Positions 4,407 to 43,824 of a DNA stretch of 49,152 nt are shown piece by piece. Source of the DNA: Callorhinchus milii. Its lineage: Eukaryota. The stretch is taken from the NCBI RefSeq assembly GCF_018977255.1, contig NW_024705390.1:1-49152 (forward strand). The letters are read 5' to 3'. A program made the translations under genes and the position numbers. Position 1 is the first letter of the stretch. Each line of letters starts with the position of its first letter. The notes under the pieces are model-generated. The model was not told where the DNA came from, made no database searches, and was given only the letters and a program-made list of their open reading frames with translations.

Positions 4407-7400
4407 CCTGCGGTTGATCATCGGGGACTTGGCCGCTTTCTTCACCTGTTACCAGAAACAGATGTCAGAGTCAGACCGTCAATGTCTGTAGGTTACAGTC
4501 AGACAGTCACAGGGAAAATGCCTGTATGTCACAGTCAGACAGGAAACGCCTGTGCATTACAGTCAGACAGAAATTGCTGTACATTGTAGGGTTTGACAGT
4601 GAGGTGAGCAGAGAACACGTCACACACGTCCACTTGCAGAGTGTAGTCTGACCCGGTGTACAGCCGCACTGTTATTCACTTACTGGATGGACGGTTGTAC
4701 TGGTGAGTCCCGGGTCCTGTCAATAAACAGACGTCAATTACACACAGACCCAGTGATGCTCGTTCAGCCCTCAAACACACACACATACACACACACACAC
4801 ACAACAGTCAGTTACACACACAGAGACAACACACACATATATAAAACCCAATCTCACACATACAGACAACAGCCGGTCTCACACTCTCACACACAACACT
4901 CAGTAACACAGACAGACAGTGACAGGTGTGGGGCTCAGTGAACCGCAGGACCAATGATGTGATAATTATAATTATAAAACACTGGTTAGGCCTCAACCAC
5001 AGACTGTGGTCAGTTCTGGGCCCCACACTGTAGGGTTAGGGTTAGTTAGAGACTGTGTTCAGTTCTGGGCCCCACACTGTAGGGTTAGAGTTAGTTAGAG
5101 ACTGTGTTCAGTTCTGGGCCCCACACTGTAGGGTTAGGGTTAGTTAGAGACTGTGGTCAGTTCTGGGCCCCACACTGTAGGAAGGATGTCAAGGCATTGG
5201 AGAGTGTGCAAAGGAGATTGACCGCGATGGCACCAGGAATGAGGGCTTCAGTTATCAGGAGAGGCCACAGACGTGAGGATTGTTCTCCTTGGAGCAGAGA
5301 AGGTTCAGAGGAGACTCCAGAAGTTTTGAAAATGATGAGGGGATTCGATAGGGGGAACAAGGAGACACTATTCCCACTGGCGGGTAGGACGGTAACCCCA
5401 GGACACCCATTCAAAATAGTTGTTAAAAGAAACAGAGTGGAGGGGAGGAGACATTTTTATCAGACGCGAGTTGTTGGGATCTGGAATGTATTGCCTGAAA
5501 GGCTGATGGGAGCTGATCAGGGCTATGGGGGGAGAGCGGGGGAGTGGGGTTGATCAGGGCTATGGGGGGAGAGCGGGGGAGTGGGGTTGATCAGGGCTAT
5601 GGGGGGAGAGCGGGGGAGTGGGGTTGATTTGTATCGCACTTTTCAAAGAGACAGACACGATGGGCTGAATGGCCTCCTTCTGTGCTGTATAATTCTATGA
5701 TTCTCTCTGATGATCGGCTCCCGCGACAGTGCCATTTATTCACCTTTTCGCTCTCGTTTTCTTTTCCAGAAGAGAATCCCCACAATCCCAGACACCAGCA
5801 AAGCCCCGATGATGAGGCCCAGGATCCAGGAAGTGGAACCGGCCGGAGTTCTCCCTGTTTTCCCATCTGTTCGGAGTGAACAACAACCAAACTTTCATTA
5901 AGGTCCTGAGAGCGAGAGAGGAGCGGAGTCTGAGAGAGGGAGAGGGTCAGACGATGAGAAGAGACAAACGAGAGAGAATGAGAGAGAGAGAGAGAGAGAG
6001 AGATCTGAAGAGTATTGGAGGACGGGAAGAGAGAGAGGTGAGGAGTATGAGAGAATATTGGAGAACGGGATGAGAAGGGGCGATGGGCGGCTGTTTAGAG
6101 TAGACAGAGAGTTCTCCCGGAGACAGACTGACACCTCATGTTATTCCCGGTTTCCCGCTGTGACCTTATGTGTGTGGATGACCTATGTATGTGGTTGACA
6201 CCCAATCCTCCTCCAGCTGTGACTCCAGATCCCTGATGTCCTGTCAGTTTGTTTGTCAGACATCAAGGACTGGTTGAGCGTAAACTTCCTGTAGCTGAAC
6301 ATCAACAAGACAGAAGCCATACTCCTTGGCTCCCATCGTGTCTCCTGTGGCTCTGACCTCCTCAACCTCCCTGTCCTTTGCCTAAGACTTACTGAACCTG
6401 TACATAACCTGAGCGTCAGCTTCGACCCTCAGCTGTCCTTCCTCCCCCACATCCGGTCCCTGACCAGGACCACTTTCCTCCACCTCCTCCACATTGCCCA
6501 CCTCCGACCTTACCTCACACCCAACACAACCAAAACCCTTGTCCATGTGTTTGTCACCTCCCACCTTGACTATTCCAATGCCCTCCTCTCTGGTCTCCCC
6601 AACCTCACTATCCACAGACCCCAACTAATCCAGAACTCCACCGCCCGTATAACCACCCGCTCGACACACCTCACCCCATCACCCCCATCACCCCCATCAC
6701 CCCGGCCCTCACCAGGCGCCACCGGCTCCCTATCAGAGACACCATCCACTTCAAGATCCTCACACTTGTCTACACGTCCCCGGCACCTCCTTAGTTTCCC
6801 AACCTTTCCTACTCCTCACTCCACCACCCGCCCCCTCCGCTCGGTTGGCTCCGGCCTCCTGCTTGTACCTCGTCCCTTCTGCTCCACCATCAGTGGCTGA
6901 GCTGACAGCCACTACGGTCTGAAACTCTGCAAATCCTTCCCTCAATCCCTCCACATTGCCCCCTCCTTCCCCATTTTCACATCACACCTGAAGACCTTCC
7001 TCTCTGACTGTGCTTACGGTCCCCTCCCCCTCCCCCTGTGTCAGCCCCACCACTGTTAAGTGCTCGAGACGCTGCCCCGTGTGAGGTTGCTGTGTAAACC
7101 CGAGTTGTTGTTGTTGATCTTACCCCACGGCACCTCCAACACCCCCTGGAGGCTGCTGTGCTCCACCAGACAGGAGAAGCCCTGCTCCCCCGCGGAGCCC
7201 GTCTCCAGCTCCATCTGCTTCACTGTCTGAAAGGTGTGGTCGTGGTTGGGTAATACACCGCTGGACTCCACCTCGTGGACAGTGTTGCCGTCCCTTGTCC
7301 AGGTCACCTCGATGGGCCGCGGATAGAAGCCAGTAACAAGACAGGAGAGAAGGGCTCTCCCCCCCACGTCCCTCCTGTAACTGACTGAGACGTCAGGGCG

Positions 7401-9515
7401 GCCTGGGGAGGGGAGCACAGTCACACACAGCTCAGCACTGAGCCCACCCTGACACAGCGAGGCTTAACCATATAATAAGGCCATATTAGTAACAACACAC
7501 ACTCACTCTGTCGCTGGAAGGTGGGTTTTGAATACTGATAATATTCCTCCATCCGATTAAGACAATCATTCTCCAGTTCCTGTTTCCAATACTGATTCAT
7601 GTCTCTGTCGTTGTCCAGTTTCTGTCTCAGGGTCTGAGCCTCGGGAACAGCAGAAATCCATCTCAGGTCGTTTTTGTCAAAGCTGAGAAAATCTTCACCA
7701 TCGAACGCGACTGTGATGTGTCCGTCTGTAGTGCCGTCCTCCCTCACCTCACAGCCAAATACCACCTGGCCATAGTGAGCCCCTGAAATAGCCATTGACA
7801 GCCATTGTGATCAGCGCAGAGTGTGTCTGTCCATCACCGACTGTCTCACACACTCACAGATACACTCACACAATAACAAAGATACACTCACACACACTCC
7901 CTCACACACGTACTGAACACACACAAACACGTGTGCACACACAGTGAACGGCGCTGGATGTTTACAGGGAATATTAAACCACTCACCGCTCGTAATATTC
8001 CTCCTCTTCATCATATACAACATATTCTCCTTCACCGTCATATAATCTGCCTTCACCCTCTCTACACGTATAAAGATGCGCTGTTCTCTAACAGCCGTCT
8101 CTACACCGGGAATCCGACTGACAATTCTCTCACTGTTGCTGTCGTAGTGATAGACCTCAACATCGTCCAACATCGTAGCACGACTGTACTCTGGAAGTTC
8201 TCCGTCCGCTGACACCCACAATTGTAACAATCTCAACACCTGAGGCTCTGTCAGACACAAACACACACACTGGTTGTACGTGTGTAACAGGTCACTGAGT
8301 ACATACTGTTCACACGCTTCACACACACTTGTCACATACAGCACACGCTCGCAACTGTCAAATGCCCACACAGCTCACAGTGTACACACAGCTCACAGTG
8401 TACACACAGGGCACAGTGTACACACAGGGCACAGCTCACAGTGTACACACAGGGCACAGTGTACACACAGCTCACAGTGCACACACAGGGCACAGCTCCC
8501 AATGTACACACAGCTCACAGTGTACACACAGGACACAGCTCACAGTGTACACACAGGACACAGCGTACACACAGCTCACAGTGTACACACAGGACACAGC
8601 GTACACACAGGGCACAGTGTACACACAGGGCACAGTGTACACACAGGGCACAGTGCACACACAGGGCACAGTGCACACACAGGGCACAGTGCACACACAG
8701 GGCATAGCTCACAGTGTACACACAGGGCACAGTTCACAGTGCACACACACGGCACAGCTCACAGTGTACACACAGGGCACAGTGTACACACAGGGCACAG
8801 CGTACACACAGCTCACAGCGTACACACGTACACACAGCTCACAGCTCCCCGCAGCCCTGCGATGGAGCATCAGCCTGGACTGTGAGCTCAGAGTCTCCAA
8901 CTTGTATGTGGTGGGGGGGGTAGGAGGAGAGGGGTTTGCACCCCACAGCCCCTGTAGCTCAGGGGTTAGACCCCTCCCCTCACACCCCACAGCCCCTGTA
9001 GCTCAGGGGTTAGACCCCTCGCCCCACACCCCACAGCCCCTGTAGCTCAGGGGTTAGACCCCTCCCCTCACAAGGCAGAGGATGTGGGTTCGATTCCCGA
9101 GTGGGACAGGACAGGGGGAAACCTTAGGCAGTTTCCTTACTCCCCTAACAACCCAACCCACCCCCACCCGCCCCCACCCCCACCCCCCCCTCACAAACAG
9201 CAGTCAGTGGGAACCTGCGGCTCATCAAATGGTCGATCGCTTTTCCGGTGATGATCCCTTCGACCAAAATAGATTTTGACCGAAAGATTCCGGTGGCTTC
9301 AGCCGCGGCTGTTTGCCCACAACACGTACGTACGGTCACTGCGCTGTCCTGCGAAGGGCTTTGCGACGTCTCGGGAGACGTGAGAAGGCGCCGCGTCAAA
9401 CGCGAGGATTATTATTATTAATATCACTATTATTGTGACAGTCCGACGGCCACTTACTTTGGAGCCCAAAGCACAAGGGCAGGAGGGCAGCGACAGCCGT
9501 CAGGAACAGCTTCAT
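4407..9515 (-). CDS. MHC class I-like heavy chain, copy A. Exons: leader 9458-9515, alpha1 7987-8247, alpha2 7507-7782, alpha3 7124-7402, TM 5744-5866, cyt1 4684-4716, cyt2 4407-4444; no own terminal exon found
   Basis: Signal peptide MKLFLTAVAALLPLCFGLQ. The 261/276/279-nt phase-1 exons carry class I motifs (YHYDS, GCEV...[11 protein letters not shown]...[12 protein letters not shown]...[10 protein letters not shown]...[10 protein letters not shown]). TM is [21 protein letters not shown] followed by KRKRERK. All splice sites are canonical. Confidence 0.92.
5100..5710 (+). mobile_element. CR1-type LINE 3' fragment with embedded 36-bp VNTR (intron 5 of copy A)
   Basis: Translates to CR1 RT C-terminal motifs ([22 protein letters not shown]..., GYGERAGEW) and ends in the CR1 tail gatgggctgaatggcctccttctgtgctgtataattctatgattct. 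Paralogous fragments lie at about 17460-18200, 29285-30850, 40850-41680 and 44810-45490. Confidence 0.85.
6225..7060 (+). mobile_element. L2-type LINE 3' fragment (intron 4 of copy A)
   Basis: Decayed L2 RT C-terminus: [22 protein letters not shown]...[27 protein letters not shown]. Paralogous copies at about 16290-17010, 27665-28850 and 39665-40370; mostly deleted in E. Confidence 0.85.
8370..8840. repeat. Intron-1 minisatellite (18/25-bp units, tgtacacacagggcacagctcacag)
   Basis: Tandem array. The same family lies at 13992-14375, 25805-26212, 35757-36325, 37628-37870, 38170-38350 and 47398-47590. Confidence 0.95.
8940..9420 (+). mobile_element. tRNA-derived SINE with tandemly amplified A-box (3 x 44 bp) in intron 1 of copy A
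   Basis: ccctgtagctcaggggttaga occurs three times, then the B-box ggttcgattccc, gggaaaccttaggcagtttccttactcc and a decayed tail ending (ATT)n. Confidence 0.8.
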
Positions 9516-9650
9516 GGTCCTGTTGGTTGGAGAAGAAGACACGGATCAAATACCACTCTCTCTCAGCTCTGCTCTCACACACTGACTCAGTCTCTGTCTG
9601 CGCTCAAACTGACTCAGTCTCTGACTGATCTCACACTGACTCACTCACCG

Positions 9651-9716
9651 CCAATGGGAGGATCTCGGGAGCCGCTCGTAATGGGTCTCCGGGTAAAGGC
9701 TCTGAAACAGGTTGTG
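9651..9716 (-). promoter_or_regulatory. S-X-Y class I promoter module, copy A
   Basis: Reverse strand: caacctgt (S), cctttacccggagac (X1), attacga (X2-like), cccattgg (Y), about 135 bp upstream of the ATG. Confidence 0.75.
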
Positions 9717-9999
9717 ATCTGTGGTTCCTCCCCGTGGGGGAGTGTGTGTGTGTGTGTGAGAGAGAGAGTGAGTGTGTGTGAGAGGGTGTGAGTGTGTGCG
9801 AGAGGCTGTGAGTGTGTGTGAGAGGGTGTGTGTGAGTGTATAAGTGTGCGATTGTGTGTGTGAGTGTGAATATGACTGTGATTGTGTCAATGTGTCTCAG
9901 TGAGTGAGTGAGTGAGTGAGTGCAGCATCTCCTAAAAAAAACCTACCCTCGACCCGACCCGACCTTCCTGGAACGCGAGTAACACCCCTCCCTCCAACA

Positions 10000-10490
10000 A
10001 GCCCCTCCACTCTCCCCTTGAGCCCCTCCACTCTCCCCTTGAGCCCCTCCACTCTCCCCTTGAGCCCCTCCACTCTCCCCTTGAGCCCCTCCACTCTCCC
10101 CTTGAACCTCCACTCTCCCCTTGAGCCCCTCCACTCTCCCCTTGAGCCCCTCCACTCTCCCCTTGAGCCCCTCCACTCTCCCCTTGAGCCCCTCCACTCT
10201 CCCCTTGAGCCCCTCCACTCTCCCCGTGAGCCCCTCCACTCTCCCCTTGAGCCACTCCCCCCTCGAGCCCCTCCAATTACTACTCGAGCCCATCCACACC
10301 CTTCTCGAGCCCCTCCACTCTCTCCTCGACCCTCTCTGCTCTTTCCTCGATCCCTCCACTCTCTACGCGAGCCCCTCCACTCCCTTCTTGACCCCCTCCA
10401 CTTCCTCCTCGAGCCCCTCCACTCCCCGCTCGAGCCCCTCCACTCCCCGCTCGAGCCCCTCCACTCCCTCGAGCCCCTCCGCTCCCTCCT
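10000..10490. repeat. 21-bp minisatellite (gagcccctccactctcccctt) abutting an L2 ORF2 fragment
   Basis: Tandem array. Paralogues at 24465-24775, 34195-35060 and 48940-49152. Confidence 0.95.
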
Positions 10491-11110
10491 CCAGTCTGGT
10501 TTTCACGGTGACGGCCGACAGCACAGAGACAGCACTCATCAAATTAACAAATGGCGTCCTCTCTCTCTCTCTCTGTGACCAGCGCTCCCACTCCCTCCTC
10601 GACCTCCTCGACCTCTCCCCCACGTTCAACACAGTCGACCACTCCATCCTCCTCCACCGCCTCTCCTCCCTCACCCTCCTCAGTGGGACCGCACTCACAT
10701 GGTTCCAGTCCTACTGACTAACTGCCAACACCACATCTCGGCAAAGGGTCTCTCCCTCCCGCCCACACCCGGGCACCTGCGGGTACCCCAAGGCTCCATC
10801 TTCTTTTGTCATCTACATGTCCCTAACTATCTGACCTGCTGACCCCCCACTCCACCGCCCGCTGCCGCTGCTCGGCTGCCTCCGGCCTCCGGTTTGTCCC
10901 TCACCCCCTCCGCTCCACCATCGGAGCTTTCAGTCACTACACCCCGAAGCTCTCCCCTCAATCCCTGTGCCTTTCCCCCTCCCTCCCCACTCTCAAATCC
11001 GGCCTCAAGACCATCCTTTTTGATGGGGCTTACGGTCTCCTTCCCCCTCCCTCTCCCCCTGCCTCGGGGTCAGACTCCACCACTGTCAAGCGCTCCGGGA
11101 CACCACCCCA
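10490..11110 (+). mobile_element. L2 LINE fragments (RT N-terminal part and 3' end)
   Basis: LQSGF...[11 protein letters not shown]....[20 protein letters not shown].....[10 protein letters not shown] is the L2 RT motif. The inverted paralogue lies at about 23850-24460 and 33930-34190. Confidence 0.8.
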
Positions 11111-11789
11111 CGTCAACAACAACAACAACATTACATGTGTACAGTGCCTTTCACGTCGGGAGGACGTCCCAAGGCACTGGACGGTCACAGCATTTCAGAC
11201 CTGAGCTGCGGTCAGTGAGGGAGAAGGGGGGAGACTGATGGCAACTCAGGGGGAGGGGGTTAGAGCGCAGGGGGGAGGGGGTTACAGCTCAGGGGAGGGG
11301 GGGTTACAGCTCGGAGTGGGGGGGGGATTACGGCTCCGTTGGTAATCACAGACCTCAGGCCCTCCCTCCGCTCAGCCAAGACCCCAAGTCAAGAGTCAGG
11401 GTCTTGACGTGGCCTTGAAAGAGGGGCGGGAGGGAGGCAGCGAGGCGGAGGGACTCCAGGAATGAGGTACAGAGAGCGGGCGGGGGGGGGGGAGGGGGCA
11501 AAACACAATGGCGGTTGGTGGTGGGTGGGGCAGACGGGGTGTGAGTGAGTGGGGGGACATGAAGCCGGGGGCAGGTGGGGAGATGGCAGAGGGCGGTTGG
11601 AGGAGGAGAGGGTGGGGGAGGGGAATCTCTCTCCGGGCCGGATCAGGCCCGCGGGCCGACAGTTGGCCCAGCCTGGCTTCAGGAGCAGTGGGAAGACAAC
11701 TAAACTGTGTGGAGCCGCTCCTCACTGGTCACTGGGGAAAGAGCCGCTTTGCTGTGAGGAAACTGCTGATGGTGTGTGAGAGGGTCAAG

Positions 11790-12215
11790 TGACGGCCCCC
11801 AACGGCTCCCGCCCGCGCTCAGACCACGTGACGGCCCCCAACGGCTCCCGCCCGCGCTCAGACCACGTGACGCCCCCCAACGGCTCCCGCCCGCGCTCAG
11901 ACCACGTGCTCCTCCCCAACTCCCGCTCCCGATTGGCTGGACTCAGACCCACGTGACGCTGCTGCTGCCCAACGGCTCCCGCTCGAGGCTGCGCTCGGCG
12001 CTCAGTGGCAGTTGGAGCCGATCACGTGCCGCCCCCGAGCTGGAGAGGCGGGAAAAAGGCCCCGAGATCCCGACTGTGTCCCCGACATGTGGCGGTGATT
12101 GGACGGACGATCGATGATCAAGCAGTAGCCCCGCCCCCCGCCGGCAGGATGGGCGGAGCATTTGTTATACAGTGAACAACAGGTACAGCCTCGCGGTGGC
12201 ACAGCGGCGGGAAGG
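11790..12215. promoter_or_regulatory. CpG-island-like module with 39-bp E-box (GTCACGTGG) repeats and CCAAT boxes
   Basis: High CpG density, CACGTG in each of three 39-bp units plus two more, and ATTGG at two sites. Inverted paralogues at 22810-23260 and 33540-33925. No downstream coding exon was identified. Confidence 0.5.
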
Positions 12216-12224
12216 AATGGCCTC

Positions 12225-12470
12225 TCTCTCGCTCCCTGCCCGGCCCCGCCCCTCGCTGCCCGGCCCCGCCCCTCGCTGCCCGCCCCGCCCCGCCCCCGCC
12301 CCTCGCTGCCCGGCCCCGCCCCTCGCTGTCCGGCCCCGCCCCTCGCTGCCCGGCCCCGCCCCTCGCTGCCCGGCCCCGCCCCTCGCTGCCCGGCCCCGCC
12401 CCTCGCTGCCCGGCCCCGCCCCTCGCTGCCCGGCCCCGCCCCTCGCTGCCCGGCCCCGCCCCTCGCTGTC
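12225..12470. repeat. 20-bp GC-box minisatellite (cctcgctgcccggccccgcc)
   Basis: Each unit contains GGGGCGGGGC on the minus strand. Inverted paralogues at 13320-13575 and 22370-22810. Confidence 0.95.
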
Positions 12471-12524
12471 CGGCTCACTGTGTGACATGACAGGACACAG
12501 GAGGTGAGGAGGAGCCGCTCCCCT

Positions 12525-13105
12525 CCCCCAACACTGCCCCTCCAACACTGCCCCCCCAACACTGCCCCCCAAAAAACTGCCAACCCAACACTGCCCCCCA
12601 ACACTGCCCCCTCAACACTGCCCCCCCAACACTGCCCCCCAACACTGCCCCCAAAAAACTGCCAACCCAACACTGCCCCCCAACACTGCCCCCCCAACAC
12701 TGCCCCGCACCAACACTGCCACCCCCCAACACTGCCTCCCTCCAACACTGCCCCAACATTGACCCCCCCAACACTGACACTCCCGCAACACTGACCCCCC
12801 CCACACTGCCCCAACACTGCCCCCCACACTGCCCCCCAACACTGCCCCCACCCCAAGATTCCCTCCATCAACACTGCCCCCCCACACTGCCCCCCACACT
12901 GCAACCCCCACACTGCCCCCCCACACTGCCCCAACACTGCCCCAACACTGCCCCCCCACACTGCACCCACACACTGCCCCCCCACACTGCCCCCCCACAC
13001 ACTGCCCCCCACACACTGCCCCAACACTGCCCCTCCCCACACTGCCCCCCCAACACTGCCCCCCACCCCAACATTCCCTCCATCAACACTGCCCCCCACA
13101 CTGCA
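12525..13105. repeat. C-rich minisatellite (ccaacactgccccc variants) at the centre of the A/B head-to-head arrangement
   Basis: Directly visible. A related short array lies at 44490-44573. Confidence 0.9.
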
Positions 13106-13244: not shown

Positions 13245-13269
13245 NNNNNNNNNNNNNNNNNNNNNNNNN
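13245..13269. other. Assembly gap (25 N)
   Basis: Run of N; there is also a single N at 43771. Confidence 1.
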
Positions 13270-13666
13270 AAGGGGAGCGGCTCCTCCTCACCTCCTGTGT
13301 CCTGTCACGTCACACAGTGACAGCGAGGGGCGGGGCCGGGCAGCGAGGGGCGGGGCCGGGCAGCGAGGGCGGGGGCCGGGCAGCGAGGGGCGGGGCCGGA
13401 GCAGCGAGGGGCGGGCCGGCAAGCGAAGGGCGGGGCCGGACAGCGAGGGGCGGGGCCGGGCAGCGAGGGGCGGGGCGGGGCAGCGAGGGGCGGGCCGGGC
13501 AGCCAGGGGCGGGGCCGGGCAGCGAGGGGCGGGGCCGGGCAGCCAGGGGCGGGGCCGGGCAGCGAGAGAGCGGGCCGGATCTGCTCCAATCTCCCCCTCC
13601 GCACCCCCCAAAATACACAGAATATACTATAACACACAGTGACAGTCAGAGTCTGGGGCCACTTAC

Positions 13667-13724
13667 TGTGGAGCGCACTGCACACAGGCAGGAGGGCAGC
13701 GAGAGCCATCACAAGGACCTTCAT
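13667..13724 (-). CDS. Class I leader exon ([19 protein letters not shown]), inverted relative to copy B
   Basis: 58-nt phase-1 exon with a GTAAGT donor, identical to the leaders of C (25597-25654) and D (35547-35604) but on the minus strand. Confidence 0.85.
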
Positions 13725-13844
13725 GGTCCTGTTGGATGGTCACTGCAATGTGCCCAACACTGGACCTCACACTGATGGTGTCCAACCGGACCTCAGCTCT
13801 GAGCCCTCCCTCTGATCTCACTCTGTGGCTGAGCTCACACTGAG

Positions 13845-13910
13845 CCAATGGGAGGATCTCGGGAGCTGCTCCCAACTTGTCTCCAGGTAAAAGGCCTGAA
13901 ATAGGTGACC
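13845..13910 (-). promoter_or_regulatory. Divergent S-X-Y promoter module inside the inverted block
   Basis: Reverse strand: cacctat (S-like), ccttttacctggagac (X1), X2 altered to gttggg, cccattgg (Y). Confidence 0.65.
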
Positions 13911-14649
13911 GTTTGGTGGTTTCTCCCTGATTGCAGCGGAGTTCCTTTTCTCAGTCTGTCACCATTCACTGACACTGTTCTCTTCCCTTCCGTGTGTACA
14001 CTGTGAGCTGTGCCCTGTGTGTACGCTGTGCCCTGTGCCCTGTGTGTACACTGTGAGCTGTGCCCTGTGTGTACACTGTGAGCTGTGCCCTGTGTGTACA
14101 CTGTGAGCTGTGCCCTGTGTGTACACTGTGAGCTGTGCCCTGTGTGTACACTGTGAGCTGTGCCCTGTGTGTACACTGTGAGCTGTGCCCTGTGTGTACG
14201 CTGTGCCCTGTGTGCACACTGTGCCCTGTGTGTACGCTGTGCCCTGTGTGTACGCTGTGCCCTGTGTGTACGCTGTGCCCTGTGTGTACGCTGTGCCCTG
14301 TGTGTACGCTGTGCCCTGTGTGTACGCTGTGCCGTGTGTACGCTGTGCCCTGTGTGTACGCTGTGCCGTGTGTACATTGATTCTGTTTGTTTGCTCTCTC
14401 CCCCCCTCCATACTCTCCCACCGCCTCACCCCTGCTCTCCCCCCTGTCCACACTCCCCCCACTCTCCCCGCCTGCTCTCCCCCCTCCCTGCTCTACTCGC
14501 TCCTGCTCTCCCCTCTCCTTGTGTGTACACTTAGTTTGTATGTGTTCAGTGTGCGCTACATGTGCAAAGTGTGTGCAAAGCGTGTGTACAGCATGTTCTC
14601 CATGTGAACTGTGACACATGTACAATCACTGTGTGTTTGTGTCTGACAG

Positions 14650-17600
14650 AGCCTGAGGTGTTGAGATGTTTTGTTACGCTGATATCGGAGGACAACAATT
14701 TTCCGGAGTATCTCGTTGCTGTGATGTTGGAGGATGTTCAGATCTATCACTATGAGAGCAACAGTCGGACAATTGTCATCCGGATTCCCAGTGTACAGAC
14801 GGCTGTTAATGATCATCACTTCAACATATATCTAGAAATATGGAAGTTAGTTCATACGACAATGAAGGAGAATATGCTGTATATGATGGAGAGCAGAAAT
14901 ATCACGAGCGGTGAGTGGTTTAATATTCCCTGTGAACATCCAGCACTGTTCACTGTGTGCGTGTGAGTGTGTGAGAGAGAGAATGTGTGTGTGTGTGAGT
15001 GTGAGACAGTCGGTGATGGACAGACACACTCTGCGCTGATCACAATGGCTGTCAATGGCTATTTCAGGGATTCACTATGTCCAGGTGTTGTCTGGCTGTG
15101 AGGTGAGGGAGGACGGCACTACAGACGGACACCTCACAGTCGCGTTCGATGGTGAAGATTTTCTCAGCTTTGACAAAAACGACCTGAGATGGATTTCTGC
15201 TGTTCCCGAGGCTCAGACCCTGAGACAGAAACTGGAAAATCAGACAGACATGAATAAGTATTTGAAACAGGACCTGGAGAATGATTGTCCGACTCGGATG
15301 GAGGAATACTATCAGCGTTCAAAATCCGCCTTCCAGAGACAGAGTGAGTGTGTGTTGTTACTAATATAAAATCACAGAATCATGTGGCAACTTGTGGCTG
15401 CGGATCACCAACCTTATTTGCCTCATTCCGTGCCTTACGCACACGTACTCCCAAACTGCCTTTGTCTGCACAGCATTTCTTGCTGTCCGATCGCTCCTGT
15501 TTCTGGAATCTTTATTCTCCCCAGTCCTCGCCAGGCGCCACTGCTCCCAGTCACCGAACAGATCAACTTCAAGATCCTCTCACTCGTTGTCAAATCACCT
15601 CCTGCCCTCGCGCCTCCCTATCTCTGTGATTTGCTTGTCCTCCACTCCACCACCCGCTGCCTCCGCTCGGCTGGCTCCAGCCTCCTGATTGTCCCTCGGC
15701 CCCTCCGCTCTGCCATGGGTTGCCGTGCCTTTGGATACCACACCCCGAAACTCTGGAACTCTCTACGCACCATCCCAGACTCACGTCTGCGGATGCAGAA
15801 ACGCCTGTCAAGCCCCCGATTAACAAATCACATATGACAACTGCATTTGGGATTCGATCATTCCCTATATGACCTTATTATATGGTTAAGCCTCGCTGTG
15901 TCAGGGTGGGCTCAGTGCTGAGCTGTGTGTGACTGTGCTCCCCTCCCCAGGCCGCCCTGACGTCTCAGTCAGTTACAGGAGGGACGTGGGGGGGAGAGCC
16001 CTTCTCTCCTGTCTTGTTACTGGCTTCTATCCGCGGCCCATCGAGGTGACCTGGACAAGGGACGGCAACACTGTCCACGAGGTGGAGTCCAGCGGTGTAT
16101 TACCCAACCACGACCACACCTTTCAGACAGTGAAGCAGATGGAGCTGGAGACGGGCTCCGCGGGGGAGCAGGGCTTCTCCTGTCTGGTGGAGCACAGCAG
16201 CCTCCAGGGGGTGTTGGAGGTGCCGTGGGGTAAGATCAACAACAACAACTCGGGGTTACACAGCAACCTCACACGGGGCAGCGTCTCGAGCACTTAACAG
16301 TGGTGGGGCTGACACAGGGGGAGGGGGAGGGGACCGTAAGCACAGTCAGAGAGGAAGGTCTTCAGGTGTGATGTGAAAATGGGGAAGGAGGGGGCAATGT
16401 GGAGGGATTGAGGGAAGGATTTGCAGAGTTTCAGACCGTAGTGGCTGTCAGCTCAGCCACTGATGGTGGAGCAGAAGGGACGAGGTATAAGCAGGAGGCC
16501 GGAGCCAACCGAGCGGAGGGGGCGGGTGGTGGAGTGAGGAGTAGGAAAGGTTGGGAAACTAAGGAGGTGTCGGGGACGTGTAGACAAGTGTGAGGAACTT
16601 GAAGTGGATGTGGTCTCTGATAGGGAGCCGGTGGCGCCTGGTGAGGGCCGGGGTGATGGGGGTGATGGGGGTGATGGGGGTGAGGTGTGTCGAGCGGGTG
16701 GTTATACGGGCGGTGGAGTTCTGGATTAGTTGGGGTCTGTGGATAGTGAGGTTGGGGAGACCAGAGAGGAGGGCATTGGAATAGTCAAGGTGGGAGGTGA
16801 CAAACACATGGACAAGGGTTTTGGTTGTGTTGGGTGTGAGGTAAGGTCGGAGGTGGGCAATGTGGAGGAAAGTGGTCCTGGTCAGGGACCGGATGTGGGG
16901 GAGGAAGGACAGCTGAGGGTCGAAGCTGATGCTCAGGTTATGTACAGGTTCAGTAAGTCTTAGGCAAAGGACAGGGAGGTTGAGGAGGTCAAAGCCACAG
17001 GAGACATACATGGGTCATCAGCATAAATAAGGTCACAGCGGGAAACAGGAATAACATGAGGTGTCAGTCTGTCTCCGGGAGATCTCTCTGTCTTCTCTAA
17101 ACAGCCGCCCATCGCCCCTTCTCATCCAACATTCTCTCATACTCCTCACCTCTCTCTCTTCCCATCCTCCAATACTCTGCAGATCTCTCTCTCTCACTTG
17201 TTGCTTTCTCTCTTCTCGCCCTCTGACCCTCTCCCTCTCTCAGACTCCGCTCCTCTCTCGCTCTCAGGACCTTAATGAAAGTTTGGTTGTTGTTCACTCC
17301 GAACAGATGGGAAAACAGGGAGAACTCCGGCCGGTTCCACTTCCTGGATCCTGGGCCTCATCATCGGGGCTTTGCTGGTGTCTGGGATTGTGGGGATTCT
17401 CTTCTGGAAAAGAAAACGAAAGAAAAAAGATGAATGGCACTGTCGCGGGAACCGATTATCAGAGAGAATCATAGAATTATACAGCACAGAAGGAGGCCAT
17501 TCAGCCCATCGTGTCTGTCTCTTTGAAAAGTGCGATACAAATCAACCCCACTCCCCCGCTCTCCCCCATAGCCCTGATCAACCCCACTCCCCCGCTCTCC

Positions 17601-22369: not shown

Positions 22370-23260
22370 GACAGCGAGGCGGGGCCGGGCAGCGAGGGGC
22401 GGGGCCGGGCAGCGAGGGGCGGGGCCGGCAGCGAGGGGCGGGGCCGGGCAGCGAGGGGCGGGGCCGGCAGCGAGGGGCGGGGCCGGACAGCGAGGGGCGG
22501 GGCATGGCAGTGAGGGGCGGGGCATGGCAGTGAGGGGCGGGGCATGGCAGCGAGGGGCGGGGCCGGGCAGCGAGGGGCGGGGCCGGGCAGCGAGGAGCGG
22601 GGCCGGGCAGCGAGGGGCGGGGCCGGGCAGCGAGGGGCGGGGCCGGGCAGCGAGGGGCGGGGCATGGCAGCGAGGGGCGGGGCAGGCAGCGAGGGGCGGG
22701 GCCGGGCAGCGAGGGGCGGGGCCGGGCAGCGAGGGGCGGGGCCGGGCAGCGAGGGGCGGGGCAGGGCAGCGAGGGGCGGGGCAGGGCAGCGAGGGGCGGG
22801 GCCGGGCAGGGAGCGAGAGAGAGGCCATTCCTTCCCGCCGCTGTGCCACCGTGAGGCTGTACCTGTTGTTCACTGTATAACAAATGGATGATCCGTCCAA
22901 TCACCGCCACATGTCGGGGACACAGTCGGGATCTCGGGGCCTTTTTCCCGCCTCTCCAGCTCGGGGGCGGCACGTGATCGGCTCCAACTGCCACTGAGCG
23001 CCGAGCGCAGCCTCGAGCGGGAGCCGTTGGGCAGCAGCAGCGTCACGTGGGTCTGAGTCCAGCCAATCGGGAGCGGGAGTTGGGGGCGTCACGTGGTCTG
23101 AGCGCGGGCGGGAGCCGTTGGGGGGCGTCACGTGGTCTGAGCGCGGGCGGGAGCCGTTGGGGGCCGTCACGTGGTCTGAGCGCGGGCGGGAGCCGTTGGG
23201 GGGCGTCACGTGGTCTGAGCGCGGGCGGGAGCCGTTGGGGGCCGTCACTTGACCCTCTCA
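22370..23260. promoter_or_regulatory. GC-box array plus CpG/E-box module (four 39-bp units), upstream unit of copy C
   Basis: Reverse complement of 11790-12470. CGTCACGTGG occurs at 23087, 23126, 23165 and 23204. Confidence 0.5.
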
Positions 23261-25394
23261 CACACCATCAGCAGTTTCCTCACAGCAAAGCGGCTCTTTC
23301 CCCAGTGACCAGTGAGGAGCGGCTCCACACAGTTGAGTTGTCTTCCCACTGCTCCTGAAGCCAGGCTGGGCCAACTGTCGGCCCGCGGGCCTGATCCGGC
23401 CCGGAGAGAGATTCCCCACCCCTCCCCCACCCTCTCCTCCACCAACCGCCCTCTGCCATCTCCCCACCTGCCCCCGGCTTCATGTCCCCCCACTCACTCA
23501 CACCCCGTCTAGCCCCCCCACCGCCCACCGCCATTGTGTTTTGCCCCCTCCCCCCCCCCCCCCGCCCTCTGTACCTCATTCCTGGAGTCCCTCCGCCTCG
23601 CTGCCTCCCTCCCGCCCCTCTTTCAAGGCCACGTCAAGACCCTGACTCTTGACTTGGGGTCTTGGCTGAGCGGAGGGAGGGCCTGAGGTCTGTGATTACA
23701 AACAGGAGCCGTAACCCCCCCCCACTCCGAGCTGTGACCCCTCCCCCTCAGGTCTGAAATGCTGTGACCGTCCAGTGCCTTGGGACGTCCTCCCGACGTG
23801 AAAGGCGCTGTACACATGTAATGTTGTTGTTGTTGTTGACGTGGGGTGGTGTCCCGGAGCGCTTGACAGTGGTGGAGTCTGACCCCGAGGCAGGGGGAGA
23901 GGGAGGGGGAAGGAGACCGTAACCCCCATCAAAAAGGATGGTCTTGAGGCAGGACTTGAGAGTGGGGAGGGAGGGGGAAAGGCACAGGGATTGAGGGGAG
24001 AGCTTCGGGGTGTAGTGACTGAAAGCTCCGATGGTGGAGCGGAGGGGGTGAGGGACAAACCGGAGGCCGGAGGCAGCCGAGCAGCGGCAGCGGGCGGTGG
24101 AGTGGGGGGTCAGCAGGTCAGATAGTTAGGGACATGTAGATGACAAAAGAAGATGGAGCCTTGGGGTACCCGCAGGTGCCCGGGTGTGGGCGGGAGGGAG
24201 AGACCCTTTGCCGAGATGTGGTGTTGGCAGTTAGTCAGTAGGACTGGAACCATGTGAGTGCGGTCCCACTGAGGAGGGTGAGGGAGGAGAGGCGGTGGAG
24301 GAGGATGGAGTGGTCGACTGTGTTGAACGTGGGGGAGAGGTCGAGGAGGTCGAGGAGGGAGTGGGAGCGCTGGTCACAGAGAGAGAGAGAGAGGACGCCA
24401 TTTGTTAATTTGATGAGCGCTGTCTCTGTGCTGTCGGCCGTCACCGTGAAAACCAGACTGGAGGAGGGAGCGGAGGGGCTCGAGCGGGGAGTGCAGGGGC
24501 TCGAGGAGGAAGTGGAGGGGCTCGAGGAGGAAGTGGAGGGGGCCAAGAAGGGAGTGGAGGGGCTCGCGTAGAGAGTGGAGGGGATCGAGGAAAGAGCGGA
24601 GAGGGTCGAGGAGAGAGTGGAGGGGCTCGAGAAGGGTGTGGATGGGCTCGAGGAGGGAGCGGAGGGGCTCAAGGAGGGAGTGGAGGGGCTCGAGGGGAGA
24701 GTGGAGGGGCTCGAGGGGAGAGTGGAGGGGCTCGAGGGGAGAGTGGAGGGGCTCGAGGGGAGAGTGGAGCAGTTTGTGGAGGGAGGGGTGTAACTCGCGT
24801 TCCAGGGGCTTCGTCAGGAAGGTCGGGTCGAGGGTAGGTTTTTTTTAGGAGATACTGCACTCACTCACTCTCACTCACTCACTCACTCACTCACTCACTC
24901 ACTCACTCACAGACACACTGACAGTCACAATCACAGTCATATTCACACACACACTCACACCCTCTCTCACACACTCACAGCCTCTCGCACACACACACAC
25001 ACCCTCTCACACACACTCACAGCCTCTCCCACACACTCACACCCTCTCTCACACACTCACAGCCTCTCGCACACACACACACACCCTCTCACACACACTC
25101 ACAGCCTCTCACACACTCACACCCTCTCTCACACACACACCCTCTCTCACACACTCACACCCTCTTTCACACACACACGCACCCTCTCACACACACTCAC
25201 AGCCTGTCTCACACACACTCACACCCTCTCTCACACACACACACACCCTCTCAAACACACTCACACCCTCTCTCTCATCACACACACCCTCTCAAACACA
25301 CACACACCCTCTCTCACACACTCACACCCTCTCTCCCACACACTCACACCCTCTCTCTCACACACACACACCCCCACGGGGAGGAACCACAGAT

Positions 25395-25460
25395 CACAAC
25401 CTGTTTCAGAGCCTTTTCCCGGAGACCCGTTACGAGCGGCTCCCGAGATCCTCCCATTGG
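25395..25460 (+). promoter_or_regulatory. S-X-Y class I promoter module, copy C
   Basis: caacctgtttcagagccttttcccggagacccgttacgagcggctcccgagatcctcccattgg, 137 bp before the ATG. Confidence 0.75.
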
Positions 25461-25596
25461 CGGTGAGTGAGTCAGTGTGAGATCAGTCAGAGAGGGAGTG
25501 AGTGAGATCAGAGAGGCCTTAGGGCTGAGGTCCGGTTGGACACCATCAGTGTGAGGTCCAGTGTTGGGCACATTGCAGTGACCATCCAACAGGACC

Positions 25597-28500
25597 ATGA
25601 AGGTCCTTGTGATGGCTCTCGCTGCCCTCCTGCCTGTGTGCAGTGCGCTCCACAGTAAGTGGCCCCAGACTCTGACTGTCACTGTGTGTTATAGTATATT
25701 CTGTGTATTTTGGGGGGTGCGGAGGGGGAGATTGGAGCAGAGATTGCAGCGGAGTTCCTTTTCTCAGTCTGTCACCATTCACTGACACTGTACTCTTCCC
25801 TTCCGTGTGTACACTGTGAGCTGTGCCCTGTGTGTACACTGTGAGCTGTGCCCTGTGTGTACACTGTGAGCTGTGCCCTGTGTGTACACTGTGAGCTGTG
25901 CCCTGTGTGTACGCTGTGCCTTGTGTGTACACTGTGAGCTGTGCCCTGTGTGTACACTGTGAGCTGTGCCGTGTGTATACACTGTGAGCTGTGCCCTGTG
26001 TGTACACTGTGAGCTGTGCCCTGTGTGTACACTGTGAGCTGTGCCGTGTGTGTACACTGTGAGCTGTGCCCTGTGTGTACACTGTGAGCTGTGCCGTGTG
26101 TGTACACTGTGAGCTGTGCCCTGTGTGTACACTGTGAGCTGTGCCCAGTGTGTACACTGTGAGCTGTGCCCTGTGTGTACACTGTGCCCTGTGTGTACAC
26201 TGTGAGCTGTGTGGGCATTTGACAGTTGCGAGCGTGTGCTGTATGTGACAAGTGTGTGTGAAGCGTGTGAACAGTATGTACTCAGTGACCTGTTACACAC
26301 GTACAATCAGTGTGTGTGTTTGTGTCTGACAGAGCCTCAGGTGTTGAGATACTTACACACACTGGTGTCAGCGGACGGAGAACTTCCAGAGTACTACTGT
26401 GCTGTGATGTTGGAGGATGTTGAGATCTATCACTACGACAGCAACAGTGAGAGAATTGTCAGTCGGATTCCCGGTGTTCAGACGGCTGTTAGAGAACAGC
26501 GCTTCCCTGTACGTGTGGAGAGGGTGAAGGCAGATTATATGACGGTGAAGGAGAATATGTTGTATATGATGAAGAGGAGGAATATTACGAGCGGTGAGTG
26601 GTTTAATATTCACTGTAAACATCCAGCGCCGTTCACTGTGTGTGTGTGTTGAGTACATGTGAGTGTGTGTGTGTCTTTGTCATTGTGTGTTTGTGTGAGT
26701 TTCCGTGTATCTGTGTGAGTGTGTGTTTGTGGGTGTGTTGAGTACATGTGAGGGAGACGAGGTGTGTGTCTCTGTCATTGTGTGTGCGGTGTGTGTTTGT
26801 GGTGTACAAGTGTGAGGGGGAGTCAGTGAGTGTTTTTTTCTCTTTGTCAGTGAGTGTGTGAGACAGTCGGTGATGGACAGACACACTCTGCACTGATCAC
26901 AATGGCTGTCAATGGCTATTTCAGGGGCTCACTATGGCCAGGTGTTGTCTGGCTGTGAGGTGAGGGAGGACGGCACTACAGACGGACACATCACAGTCGC
27001 GTTCGATGGGGAAGATTTTCTCAGCTTTGACAAAAACGACCTGAGATGGATTTCTGCTGCTCCCGAGGCTCAGACCCTGAGACGGAAACTGGACAACGAC
27101 AGAGACATGAATCAGTATTGGAAACAGAAACTGGAGAATGATTGTCTTAATCGGATGGAGGAATACTATCAGTATTCAAAGTCCACCTTCCAGCGACAGA
27201 GTGAGTGTGTGTTGTTACTAATATGGCCTTATTATATGGTTAAGCCTCGCTGTGTCAGGGTGGGCTCAGTGCTGAGCTGTGTGTGACTGTGCTCCCCTCC
27301 CCAGGCCGCCCTGACGTCTCAGTCAGTTACAGGAGGGACGTGGGGGGGAGAGCCCTTCTCTCCTGTCTTGTTACTGGCTTCTATCCGCGGCCCATCGAGG
27401 TGACCTGGACAAGGGACGGCAACACTGTCCACGAGGTGGAGTCCAGCGGTGTATTACCCAACCACGACCACACCTTTCAGACAGTGAAGCAGATGGAGCT
27501 GGAGACGGGCTCCGCGGGGGAGCAGGGCTTCTCCTGTCTGGTGGAGCACAGCAGCCTCCAGGGGGTGTTGGAGGTGCCGTGGGGTAAGATCAACAACAAC
27601 AACTCGGGGTTACACAGCAACCTCACACGGGGCAGCGTCTCGAGCACTTAACAGTGGTGGGGCTGACACAGGGGGAGGGGGAGGGGACCGTAAGCACAGT
27701 CAGAGAGGAAGGTCTTCAGGTGTGATGTGAAAATGGGGAAGGAGGGGGCAATGTGGAGGGATTGAGGGAAGGATTTGCAGAGTTTCAGACCGTAGTGGCC
27801 GTCAGCTCGGCCACTGATGGTGGAGCAGAAGGGACGAGGTATAAGCAGGAGGCCGGAGCCAACCGAGCGGAGGGGGCGGGTGGTGGAGTGAGGAGTAGGA
27901 AAGGTTGGGAAACTAAGGAGGTGCCGGGGACGTGTAGACAAGTGTGAGGATCTTGAAGTGGATGTGTTCTCTGAGTCCTGTGGAGTCCTGTAGCTCAGTG
28001 GTTAGAGCACTCGCTTTGCAAGCGAGAGACCTGAGTTCAATTCCAGGCAGAGGGCGAAACCTCGGGCAAGTTTCCTTACTCCACACAGAGCCTAATAATA
28101 ATCCCTCCAAAAAACCAAAAACAATATAATAAAATTGGTCATTTTCAATCTACGACTGTTTGTGGGACATTGCTGTGCGCAATTGGCTGCCGCGTTCGCC
28201 CTCAAATATACAGTCAATTCACTTTACAGTATATTCTGTGAAGCGCTTTGGGACGTCCTCCCGACGTGAAAAGCGCTATATCAAATGCAAGGATTATTAT
28301 TATTATTATTATAGGGAGCCAGTGGCGCCTGGTGAGGGCCGGGGTGATGGGGGTGATAGGTGTGATGGGGGTGAGGTGTGTCGAGCGGGTGGTTATACGG
28401 GCGGTGGAGTTCTGGATTATTTGGGGTCTGTGGATAGTGAGGTTGGGGAGACCAGAGAGGAGGGCATTGGAATAGTCAAGGTGGGAGGTGACAAACACAT

Positions 28501-35343: not shown

Positions 35344-35410
35344 CACAACCTGTTTCAGAGCCTTTTCCCCGGAGACCTGTTACGAGCGGCTCCCGAGATC
35401 CTCCCATTGG
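35344..35410 (+). promoter_or_regulatory. S-X-Y class I promoter module, copy D
   Basis: Near-identical to the module of copy C. Confidence 0.75.
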
Positions 35411-35546
35411 CGGTGAGTGAGTCAGTGTGAGATCAGTCAGAGAGGGAGTGAGTGAGATCAGAGAGGCCTTAGGGCTGAGGTCCGGTTGGACACCATCAGT
35501 GTGAGGTCCAGTGTTGGGCACATTGCAGTGACCATCCAACAGGACC

Positions 35547-38500
35547 ATGAAGGTCCTTGTGATGGCTCTCGCTGCCCTCCTGCCTGTGTGCAGTGCGCTC
35601 CACAGTAAGTGGCCCCAGACTCTGACTGTCACTGTGTGTTATAGTATATTCTGTGTATTTTGGGGGGTGCGGAGGGGGAGATTGGAGCAGAGATTGCAGC
35701 GGAGTTCCTTTTCTCAGTCTGTCACCATTCACTGACACTGTTCTCTTCCCTTCCGTGTGTACACTGTGAGCTGTGCCCTGTGTGTACACTGTGAGCTGTG
35801 CCCTGTGTGTACACTGTGAGCTGTGCCCTGTGTGTGCACTGTGAGCTGTGCCCTGTGTGTACACTGTGAGCTGTGCCCTGTGTGTACACTGTGCCCTGTG
35901 TGTACACTGTGAGCTGTGCCCTGTGTGTACACTGTGAGCTGTGCCCTGTGTGTACACTGTGAGCTGTGCCCTGTGTGTACACTGTGAGCTGTGCCCTGTG
36001 TGTACACTGTGAGCTGTGCCCTGTGTGTACACTGTGAGCTGTGCCCTGTGTGTATGCTGTGCCCTGTGTGTACGCTGTGCCCTGTGTGTACGCTGTGCCC
36101 TGTGTGTACACTGTGCCCTGTGTGTACGCGGTGCCCTGTGTGTACGCGGTGCCCTGTGTGTACGCGGTGCCCTGTGTGTACCCGGTGCCCTCTGTGTGCA
36201 CTGTGAGCTGTGCCGTGTGTACGCGGTGCCCTGTGTGTACGCGGTGCCCTGTGTGTACGCGCTGCCCTGTGTGTACGCGGTGAGCTGTGTGTACACTGTA
36301 CGCTGTGCCCTGTGTGTACACTGTGCCCGATTTCTCCAACCGAACCCCCTACTACCCTGTTCACACCCTGCGTTCAGCGGGCTCCGGCCTGCTTCACCTG
36401 CCCGCCTCGCTCCCGCGACTATTGGCGGGTGGGCCTTCCCGCCACTCTGCCCCCACCCTCTGGAACTCCATCCCGCAGTCCCTCCGCCTCGCACCCTCCC
36501 TCGAGCCCTCCCTCGCCATCTTCAAGACTCACCTCTGGACCCTCCTCTTTGACCGTGCTTTCAATCTCCTGCTACCCCCCTTGCCCTTCACCCTCCTCCA
36601 CCCCGACCCCCGGCTCGGGTGTGTAACTCTGTCTGTCCAGCGCCTTGGAACATCCTCCCGACATGAAAAGCGCTTTACACATGTAATTTTGTGGTGGTGG
36701 TTGTTGTTATAGTTATTTCTCTGTTACAGCACCGAAGGAGACCATTGGCCATTTGTGCCTGTGCCGGTTTGGGGCTGGGAGGGGAGGGGGGGGCGGTGGG
36801 GGTGCAGGGGCTGAGGGGTGAGTGGCTGAGGGAGTGGGGCTGATGTGGAGGGTTTGACGCGGAGGGGATGAGGGGCACAGATATTGAACCTGGGTTCCTT
36901 TTCTCTGTCTGTGAGATTGCTCTCGTTCCCTCCGTGTGTTCACTGTGAGCTCTGTGCGCTGCTGTTGTATTATTGTCATTCCAGAGATGGACACAATACT
37001 CCAACTGAGCCCCAACCAGTGATTTCTAAAGATTTAGCAAAACTTCTTTGCTTTGTACTCTGTGCCTCTATATATAAAGCCAAGGATCCCATAGGCCTTT
37101 TTAACAGTGTGTCGTGTCGTGTCCTGCCACCTTCAAAGGTTCGAGCACGTGAACCCCCAGGTCTCTCGGTTCCTGCACCCCATTTAAAATGATACCATTT
37201 ATCTCGCAATATCTCTCCTCATTCCTCCTGACAAAGAGACTGACACACAGAGAGACAGACACATACACACACAGACTGAGACAAACAGAGACAGACACAA
37301 AGACAGACATACTGAAAACTGACACCGAAAGGCAGAGAGAGAGAGTGAGAGGATGTGTTGTGTGGATGTGATGGACACTCACTCACACAGAGCCACAAAC
37401 CGCCAAACACAAATCGCAGCGGAAGCTTTTACCCGGAGCCACTTTGCCAACGTTTCAAAAGGGAATTGGAAGGCACTTGAAAAGGAAATCATTGGAAGGC
37501 TTTGGGGAGAGGGAAGGGTTGAATATCAAGACCAGCCGATAGGTGTGTGAGATCAGTGAGTGAGAGAGAGTCAGTGTGTGTGGAGTCGCCGAGTGACAGA
37601 GTCAGTGTGTGAGCAGAGTGTCTGATTGAGCTGTGCCCTGTGTGTACACTATGCCCTGCGTGTGCACCGTGCCCTGCGTGTGCACCGTGCCCTGCGTGTG
37701 CACTGTGCCCTGCGTGCGCACTGTGCCCTGCGTGCGCACTGTGCCCTGCGTGCGCACTGTGCCCTGCGTGTACACACTGAGGTGTGTTTACACTCTGAGA
37801 TTTGCCCTGTGTGTACACTGTCTCCTGTGTGTATACTGTGAGCTGTGCCCTGTGTGTACACTATGAGCTAATTGCGCTCTGCATGCGTACTGTGATGTGC
37901 GTTTGCACTGTGTTTGTGAGTGTATACTGTGAGTTGTGTGTACACTTTGAGCTGTGTGTACACTGTGCCCTGGGTACGCAGTGTCCGATCATCCAAAACT
38001 CTGCAGCTCGTGTACTCTCACCACCAGACTCCGTGACCCCATCACTCCCACCCTCGCCCGACCCCACTGGCTCCCCACCCCCCAGAGGATCGAGTTCAAG
38101 ATCCTCGTCCTCACCTTTAAGGTCACCTTGTTGTTGTCCTGCATGTACACTGTGCCCTGGCTATAAACTGGGCCCTGTGTGTACACTGTGTCCTGCGTGG
38201 ATAATGTGAGCTGTGTGTGCACTGATCTGTGTGCTCTGTGCCCTGTGTGTACACTGTGAGCTGTGCCCTGTGTGTACACTGTGAGCTGTGCCCTGTGTGT
38301 ACACTGTGCCCTGTGTGTACACTGTGTCCTGTGTGTACACTGTGAGCTGTGTGGGCATTTGACAGTTGCGAGCGTGTGCTGTATGTGACAAGTGTGTGTG
38401 AAGCGTGTGAACAGTATGTACTCAGTGACCTGTTACACACGTACAACCAGTGTGTGTGTTTGTGTCTGACAGAGCCTCAGGTGTTGAGATTCTTACAAAC

Positions 38501-43365: not shown

Positions 43366-43824
43366 GGAACGGAGAATGGAGGAGCGGAGCTGAGGGACTG
43401 AGAGGAGCACAAGCGAAGGCCTGAGGGTCCTGGTGTCTCCTTTGCTCTCAGTCACTGATTCTCTCTGAGCGTCACTGGTATAACAGCAGATTCTGTTCAC
43501 ACTGACGGTGCCTTATCACATCATTGAGACGTCTCAAGTGAAGTGAATTGACTGTATTTGTGGGCGAAACATCACATTTAAAAATTCAAGATTCTCTATT
43601 AATAGTAATATCAATAACACAATGATATAAAAATATAGAGAGTGTATCTCGGGAATTGTAGAAAACTGTTGGAGTACTGAGAGTCTGTGTCTCTGTCCCT
43701 CTCTCTCTGTCTCTCTCTCTGTCTCTGTGTGTGTCTCTCTCTCTGTGTCTCTCTGTCTTCCCGTTCCCCCNTCTGTATCTCTGTCCATCTGTGACACCAG
43801 TTGTCACCAGCAACTGGGGGAGGG

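Follow-up and report, generated by a model that had tools for sequence, protein, structure and literature searches.

The analyzed window comprises 49,152 nucleotides of Callorhinchus milii scaffold MU250313.1 (assembly GCA_018977255.1) and contains five class I paralogs, which were identified by self-comparison and tblastn and are designated A to E here. Gene A (CDS 4408-9515) is encoded on the minus strand, the genes B (from 13929), C (ATG at 25597), and D (ATG near 35547) on the plus strand, and gene E (leader near 48430) again on the minus strand. Exons of paralog C matched the Pfam domains MHC_I (alpha2, 4.8e-16) and C1-set (alpha3, 1.1e-17), and the matches found in a PDB search were class I chains from fish, lizard, and bird. 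As the family shares 30-37% identity with class I proteins from other species, the five genes look like a lineage-specific nonclassical class I group. The alpha3 exon regions of A, B, C, and D (7059-7463, 15890-16294, 27244-27648, and 39244-39609) encode identical protein, and the dN/dS of alpha1 among A, C, D, and E exceeds 1, with values of up to 4.6 that are based on small counts. Strong homogenization (alpha3) is found beside diversification (alpha1) in this family.

The units upstream of A and C follow the same order, namely a GC-rich 20-mer minisatellite, approximately 2.5 kb of upstream sequence, 21-mer repeats, a CA/CT microsatellite, and the core promoter. Sequence comparison and annotation place A's own promoter and leader exon at 9435-9733 on the minus strand (ATG at 9515, MKLFLTAVAALLPLCFGLQ). 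On the B side, an arm at 13270-13579 (plus strand) consists of a unique stretch of 30 nt and a 20-mer minisatellite of the G-quadruplex type. The A-side arm at 12228-12555 (minus strand) holds the same 30 nt and the minisatellite in inverted orientation, followed outward by the full 2.5-kb upstream region of A. Identity between the arms is 90.6% (12228-12524 versus 13570-13271), the 30-nt stretch is not present in C, and both arm arrays are rich in G-quadruplex motifs. From their alignment, A and B look like the arms of an inverted duplication with a spacer of about 0.7 kb. This spacer contains a C-rich 13-mer array and a 25-N assembly gap (13245-13269) between the A contig and the B contig; 25 N is the mark that PBJelly leaves for a gap that was extended but not closed. 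The C-rich array (CCCCCAACACTGC, 12525-13065) comprises about 40 copies with 14% indels, is confined to the A-B spacer, and has G-quadruplex potential on the minus strand.

Adjoining the B-side arm, a block of 349 bp (13580-13928) carries the core promoter, the 5'UTR, the leader exon, and the first 87 nt of intron 1 of the B lineage on the minus strand, that is, in reverse orientation with respect to gene B. This assignment is based on collinearity with C and D: the reverse complement of the block aligns with 25399-25741 in C and with 35348-35691 in D (E 1e-133). Direct translation of the leader coding exon (13667-13724, minus strand) gave 19 residues plus 1 nt, that is, phase 1. The exon starts with an ATG at 13724, its coding part ends at 13667 with ...GCGCTCCACA, and a GTAAGT donor follows (GT at 13666-13665). 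The encoded leader (MKVLVMAL...) does not differ from those of C (XP_042202286) and D (isoform X3).

The part of intron 1 within the block (13580-13666, minus strand) ends at a breakpoint J and is identical to C and D through 25741 and 35691, the positions of J in these two genes. The forward sequence of B picks up at 13929, which equals J+1, and both novel junctions map to adjacent bases (J and J+1) of two intact paralogs. The junction 27-mer GAGATTGGAGCAGA|GATTGCAGCGGAG has exactly two occurrences, one in C (25728-25754) and one in D (35678-35704), at a chance expectation of 0. No difference from C or D was found over the 218 nt leading up to J (13580-13797), and the 96 nt at 13929-14024 are identical to D, starting at 35692; the 314 nt spanning the break hence show zero differences from D. 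An earlier note on this DNA had described a precise inversion of 13580-13928, the flipping of which restores intron 1 to the base. The collinearity and the adjacency of J and J+1 uphold this description, and its coordinates are correct throughout.

Direct reading of the junctions revealed no microhomology at 13579/13580 and 1 nt at 13928/13929, by which the right junction is ambiguous. A fold-back palindrome is absent from either junction, where neither flank resembles the reverse complement of the other. Inverted repeats or recombination sites were not found at the block ends, as the earlier note had stated: the search returned short pairs of 8-13 nt only, none of them located at the breakpoints. 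The minisatellite of B (13321-13578) directly adjoins the reversed block; in C, the same array is situated 2.55 kb upstream of the promoter. The intervening stretch of about 2.55 kb between the end of the minisatellite and the promoter boundary has been lost from B, while A (10171-12228) and C (22826-25377) retain it. A loss at the same breakpoint had been noticed before and estimated at roughly 3 kb; the loss is confirmed, and its size is to be corrected to the smaller value. Separately, 120 nt to the left of the gap had by eye resembled a second reversed leader remnant, and sensitive blastn gave no match between them and the block.

An alignment of the five promoters was used to assess whose promoter the block contains. 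Its promoter part (13798-13928, 131 nt, minus strand) is specific to B, with 19-26 mismatches and a 10-nt deletion relative to the promoters of A, C, D, and E, which differ from one another at just 1-12 positions. Of the SXY boxes named in the earlier note, only the ATTGG (Y/CCAAT) box is recognizable in every one of the five promoters, including that of the block, where the 10-nt deletion follows the box and a one-base insertion alters the first conserved element. In alpha1, B is the most diverged paralog as well, with 62% protein identity to C, and with a dS of 0.35-0.44 and a dN/dS of 0.6-1.0 versus the others. Since the block promoter matches no other copy and its divergence is about that of the alpha1 region of B, it is, on sequence grounds, gene B's own promoter. 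Homogenization with C and D has affected the leader part and the beginning of intron 1, as well as the alpha3 and the transmembrane exon. The unique promoter had previously been put forward as an argument against a duplicated read. This argument is valid, but it still allows an error in orientation.

Downstream of the block, the rest of intron 1 of B extends from J+1 to the alpha1 acceptor (13929-14649, plus strand) and includes a 25-mer minisatellite at 13992-14375. The alpha1 exon (14650-14910, plus strand) begins with AGCCTGAGGTGTTGAGATGT... and has an open frame. According to tblastn, the alpha2 and alpha3 exons are open, too, and the alpha3 protein equals that of C. A leader in sense orientation was not found upstream of B; five leader copies are present in the window, and the one nearest to B is antisense. 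B is thus leaderless as assembled, as had been claimed before, and the NCBI model of B (XP_042202288), which has no leader either, bears this out independently. The CDS of this model starts with a 12-nt exon (ATGGGTCTCCGG, 9681-9692, plus strand) that is located on the opposite strand within A's promoter and precedes the next exon by 4.8 kb. It is spliced to 14534, from where the intron is read through into alpha1, and the product has no signal peptide. This first exon looks like a makeshift of gene modeling and not like a real start.

A second lesion of B was found at 17429-17430 (plus strand) in the five-gene alignment. Four nucleotides (GTGA) are deleted there that serve in A, C, D, and E as the transmembrane-exon splice donor. 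Because the GT donor is missing, the NCBI model of B continues into intron sequence and terminates in a shifted frame; XP_042202288 is a makeshift model and unfit for use as a protein sequence. As B has no leader as assembled and has lost the donor of the transmembrane exon, it is probably a recently beheaded pseudogene or a null allele in this haplotype. A protein search for transcript fragments with the alpha1 ORF of B yielded no alpha1-bearing candidate of 79-250 amino acids in the database. The intron between alpha2 and alpha3 of B contains an insertion of 500 bp (15367-15867) that the other four genes do not have. Its translation resembles a repeat in the 29.7-30.3 kb region of C, and it is probably a transposable element.

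Our preferred explanation, which we consider somewhat better than an even chance, is that one deletion-inversion with three breaks turned B's own promoter and leader exon around. The first break would have occurred at the promoter-proximal end of the G-quadruplex-forming 20-mer minisatellite, the second at the boundary between the CA/CT microsatellite and the core promoter, and the third 87 nt into intron 1. Between the first and the second break, 2.55 kb would have been lost; between the second and the third, 349 bp would have been reinserted in reverse orientation through blunt joins, in the manner of end-joining or template-switch events. Such a rearrangement would have left B without promoter, start codon, and signal peptide in cis, with the alpha1-alpha3 exons still open, and its expression would be lost. 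Two of the three breaks are located at the edges of tandem repeats, in a context of inverted repeats and G-quadruplex-rich sequence. Repair probably proceeded by end joining or template switching; this attribution, like that to the fragility of G-quadruplex-forming and palindromic DNA, follows general knowledge of such events. When all explanations that assume a real inversion are taken together, it is fairly probable that the inversion exists in the animal.

A two-step course, with an inversion of 2.9 kb followed by a deletion of 2.55 kb, is possible. One complex event is more economical, since the deletion of the two-step course must end exactly at J+1. As possible causes, NAHR, fold-back reads, and repeat collapse are all ruled out by the junction anatomy, which comprises neither inverted repeats nor palindromes.

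Judging from the substitutions, the rearrangement is probably young. Since not a single substitution is present in the 314 nt around the break, the last homogenization with C and D probably preceded the rearrangement. The extracellular exons that remain in B are still open, which likewise suggests a recent event. The identical tracts could also have arisen by gene conversion after the inversion and are therefore no proof of youth.

The strongest competitor of the single deletion-inversion is an assembly artefact, which we regard as possible but clearly less likely. B would then be normal in the animal, with forward promoter, leader, and upstream region, and the B contig would have been misbuilt over its initial ~660 bases (13270-13928), either at the contig end or in the course of gap filling. 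This is plausible because the 25-N gap, by which the A and B contigs are split, lies only 311 bp to the left of the block and hence near a contig end. An artefact, however, requires two wrong junctions at the adjacent bases J and J+1 by coincidence. The single assembly examined is of the PacBio CLR type and was produced with FALCON, Quiver, Pilon, HiRise, and PBJelly in this order, with gap filling after polishing (PMC8302630 supplement). Both the PBJelly extension after polishing and the proximity-ligation joins of short contigs would favor errors of this kind, as would the repeat-rich scaffold, with minisatellites and an inverted repeat around the block. Yet neither junction is a fold-back palindrome, as a missed-adapter read would give, and a repeat collapse is unable to split a repeat at one point and to flip one half of it. 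Indels are more frequent in the minisatellite arrays next to the gap (3-7%) than in the array of C (1%), which fits a poorly built contig end, but over 314 nt the block and the sequence flanking it are free of errors and therefore not of raw-read quality. The open extracellular exons of B would suit a working gene with a merely misassembled 5' end; the separate lesion in the transmembrane-exon donor speaks against such a gene. Two ATG-started ORFs that span the junctions (13308-13724 and 13838-14377, both on the minus strand) were subjected to an exact look-up in public assemblies, which returned no record. If the block is an artefact, it marks an error in MU250313.1 that affects the annotation of an MHC-linked cluster.

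Considerably less probable is a capture of the promoter by gene A, in which the inversion would be real and the flipped block would supply A with an additional upstream promoter and an alternative first exon, the latter spliced to the A alpha1 acceptor at 8247 (minus strand, phase 1). A still more specific version, according to which the inversion is also polymorphic and the captured B-lineage promoter confers a different regulation on A, deserves slightly less credence. The geometry is compatible with a capture: the block faces A, and the leader donor at 13666 and the acceptor at 8247, 5,420 nt downstream, are both phase 1 and would join in frame. Within the determined sequence of the minus strand from 13580 to 9515, neither AATAAA nor ATTAAA occurs. 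A transcript would nevertheless have to cross about 4 kb of G-quadruplex-rich repeats and an unsequenced gap and then A's own promoter. The adjacency of A and B itself depends on a scaffold join: as A and B are on different contigs, their head-to-head order and the 5.4-kb distance are results of scaffolding. Moreover, the B-lineage promoter is unlike the other four in its first conserved element and in its spacing.

Transcript and protein models gave a similarly divided picture of a capture. Alternative first coding exons are modeled within the family (D isoforms X1 and X2, 37353-37541), and A or an allele of A is transcribed, as V9KN34, the one transcript-derived protein of this kind, clusters with A. 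V9KN34 says nothing on the leader, because it starts in the intron before alpha2. In RefSeq, by contrast, A has one protein, XP_042202287, with A's own leader, and no annotated isoform joins the MKVLVMAL leader to the alpha1 of A. The A alpha1 exon encodes PQVLRLLQLW and starts with AGCCTCAGGTGTTGAGATTG, and A's own leader ends with ...GGCTCCAAA. Both leaders end in A and join AG to give the same AAG codon, which leaves the mature A protein unaltered. Therefore, any effect of a capture could only be regulatory, and the flipped promoter, if it fires, would at most add A transcripts that encode the same mature protein. The suggestion of the earlier note that A gains a second promoter and leader thus stands with regard to the geometry (phase, frame, and absence of a polyA signal) and is opposed by the single own-leader A protein in RefSeq. 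If true, a single rearrangement would have both switched off a nonclassical class I gene and altered how the neighboring gene is expressed.

A reversible switch, in which repeated flipping of the block would assign a single promoter to either A or B and which had earlier been called conceivable, has only the geometry of one promoter between two divergent genes in its favor and is very unlikely, as the block ends have no inverted repeats or recombination signals, the accompanying deletion of 2.55 kb is irreversible, the genes annotated within the first 28.5 kb of the window include none of the recombinase type, and, to our knowledge, no vertebrate promoter switch of this kind is known. The preference for a one-off deletion-inversion over such a switch, expressed in the same note, agrees with the missing end repeats, the blunt junctions, and the base-reciprocal break found here.

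The closest known counterparts are structural variants of the deletion-inversion type ('delINV'). Like the B locus, they comprise a short segment reversed in place with an adjacent loss at one breakpoint and a disrupted gene, and their junctions are blunt or show 1-nt microhomology without flanking inverted repeats. In contrast to them, the breaks described here are located at the edges of minisatellites and microsatellites, in a head-to-head duplicated pair, and are known from one assembly only. The 5'-truncated or promoterless MHC class I pseudogenes of birth-and-death evolution also offer a parallel, as one paralog of a tandem or inverted array loses its 5' end, its neighbors stay intact, and gene conversion keeps the other exons identical; B differs from them in that its 5' end has been kept backwards and its extracellular exons are open. 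Inversions of the F8 intron 22 type similarly detach the promoter and one or more first exons from the remainder of the gene. They are, however, recurrent and arise by homologous recombination between long inverted repeats, whereas the B locus has no flanking repeats and includes a deletion. The bacterial fimS/hin switches share the short promoter-bearing segment between oppositely oriented genes, but the present case concerns a vertebrate genome with no flanking inverted repeats, no recombinase, and an irreversible deletion.

Taken together, the 5' end of B is most likely the product of an ordinary gene-killing deletion-inversion or, less likely, of an assembly error, and not a switch. If real, it represents an early stage in the death of a gene belonging to a rapidly evolving shark class I family, with a promoter and a leader that are perfect but face the wrong way. 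Real or artefact, the block indicates no new mechanism.

Some further observations concern other members of the family. A sixth paralog (P0013, P0046, P0001, and P0004) outside the window has the MKVLVMAL leader and a different alpha1 (…LFQTLVSGDGGLPEYSC…). It is represented by older-assembly or UniProt models only, has no NCBI gene in this record, and may be an allele, a missing copy, or a haplotype difference; P0013 was looked up as a route to the older assembly, and no record was found. A single N is located at 43771, between the 3' ends of D and E. The motif 'IAAE', which occurs in the D isoforms X1 and X2 and in an older-assembly model, was considered as a translation from J+1 and turned out to belong to one contiguous D exon (37353-37541). 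This alternative first coding exon of 63 codons lies within the enlarged intron 1 of D and replaces the signal-peptide leader in X1 and X2, the products of which would have no normal leader.
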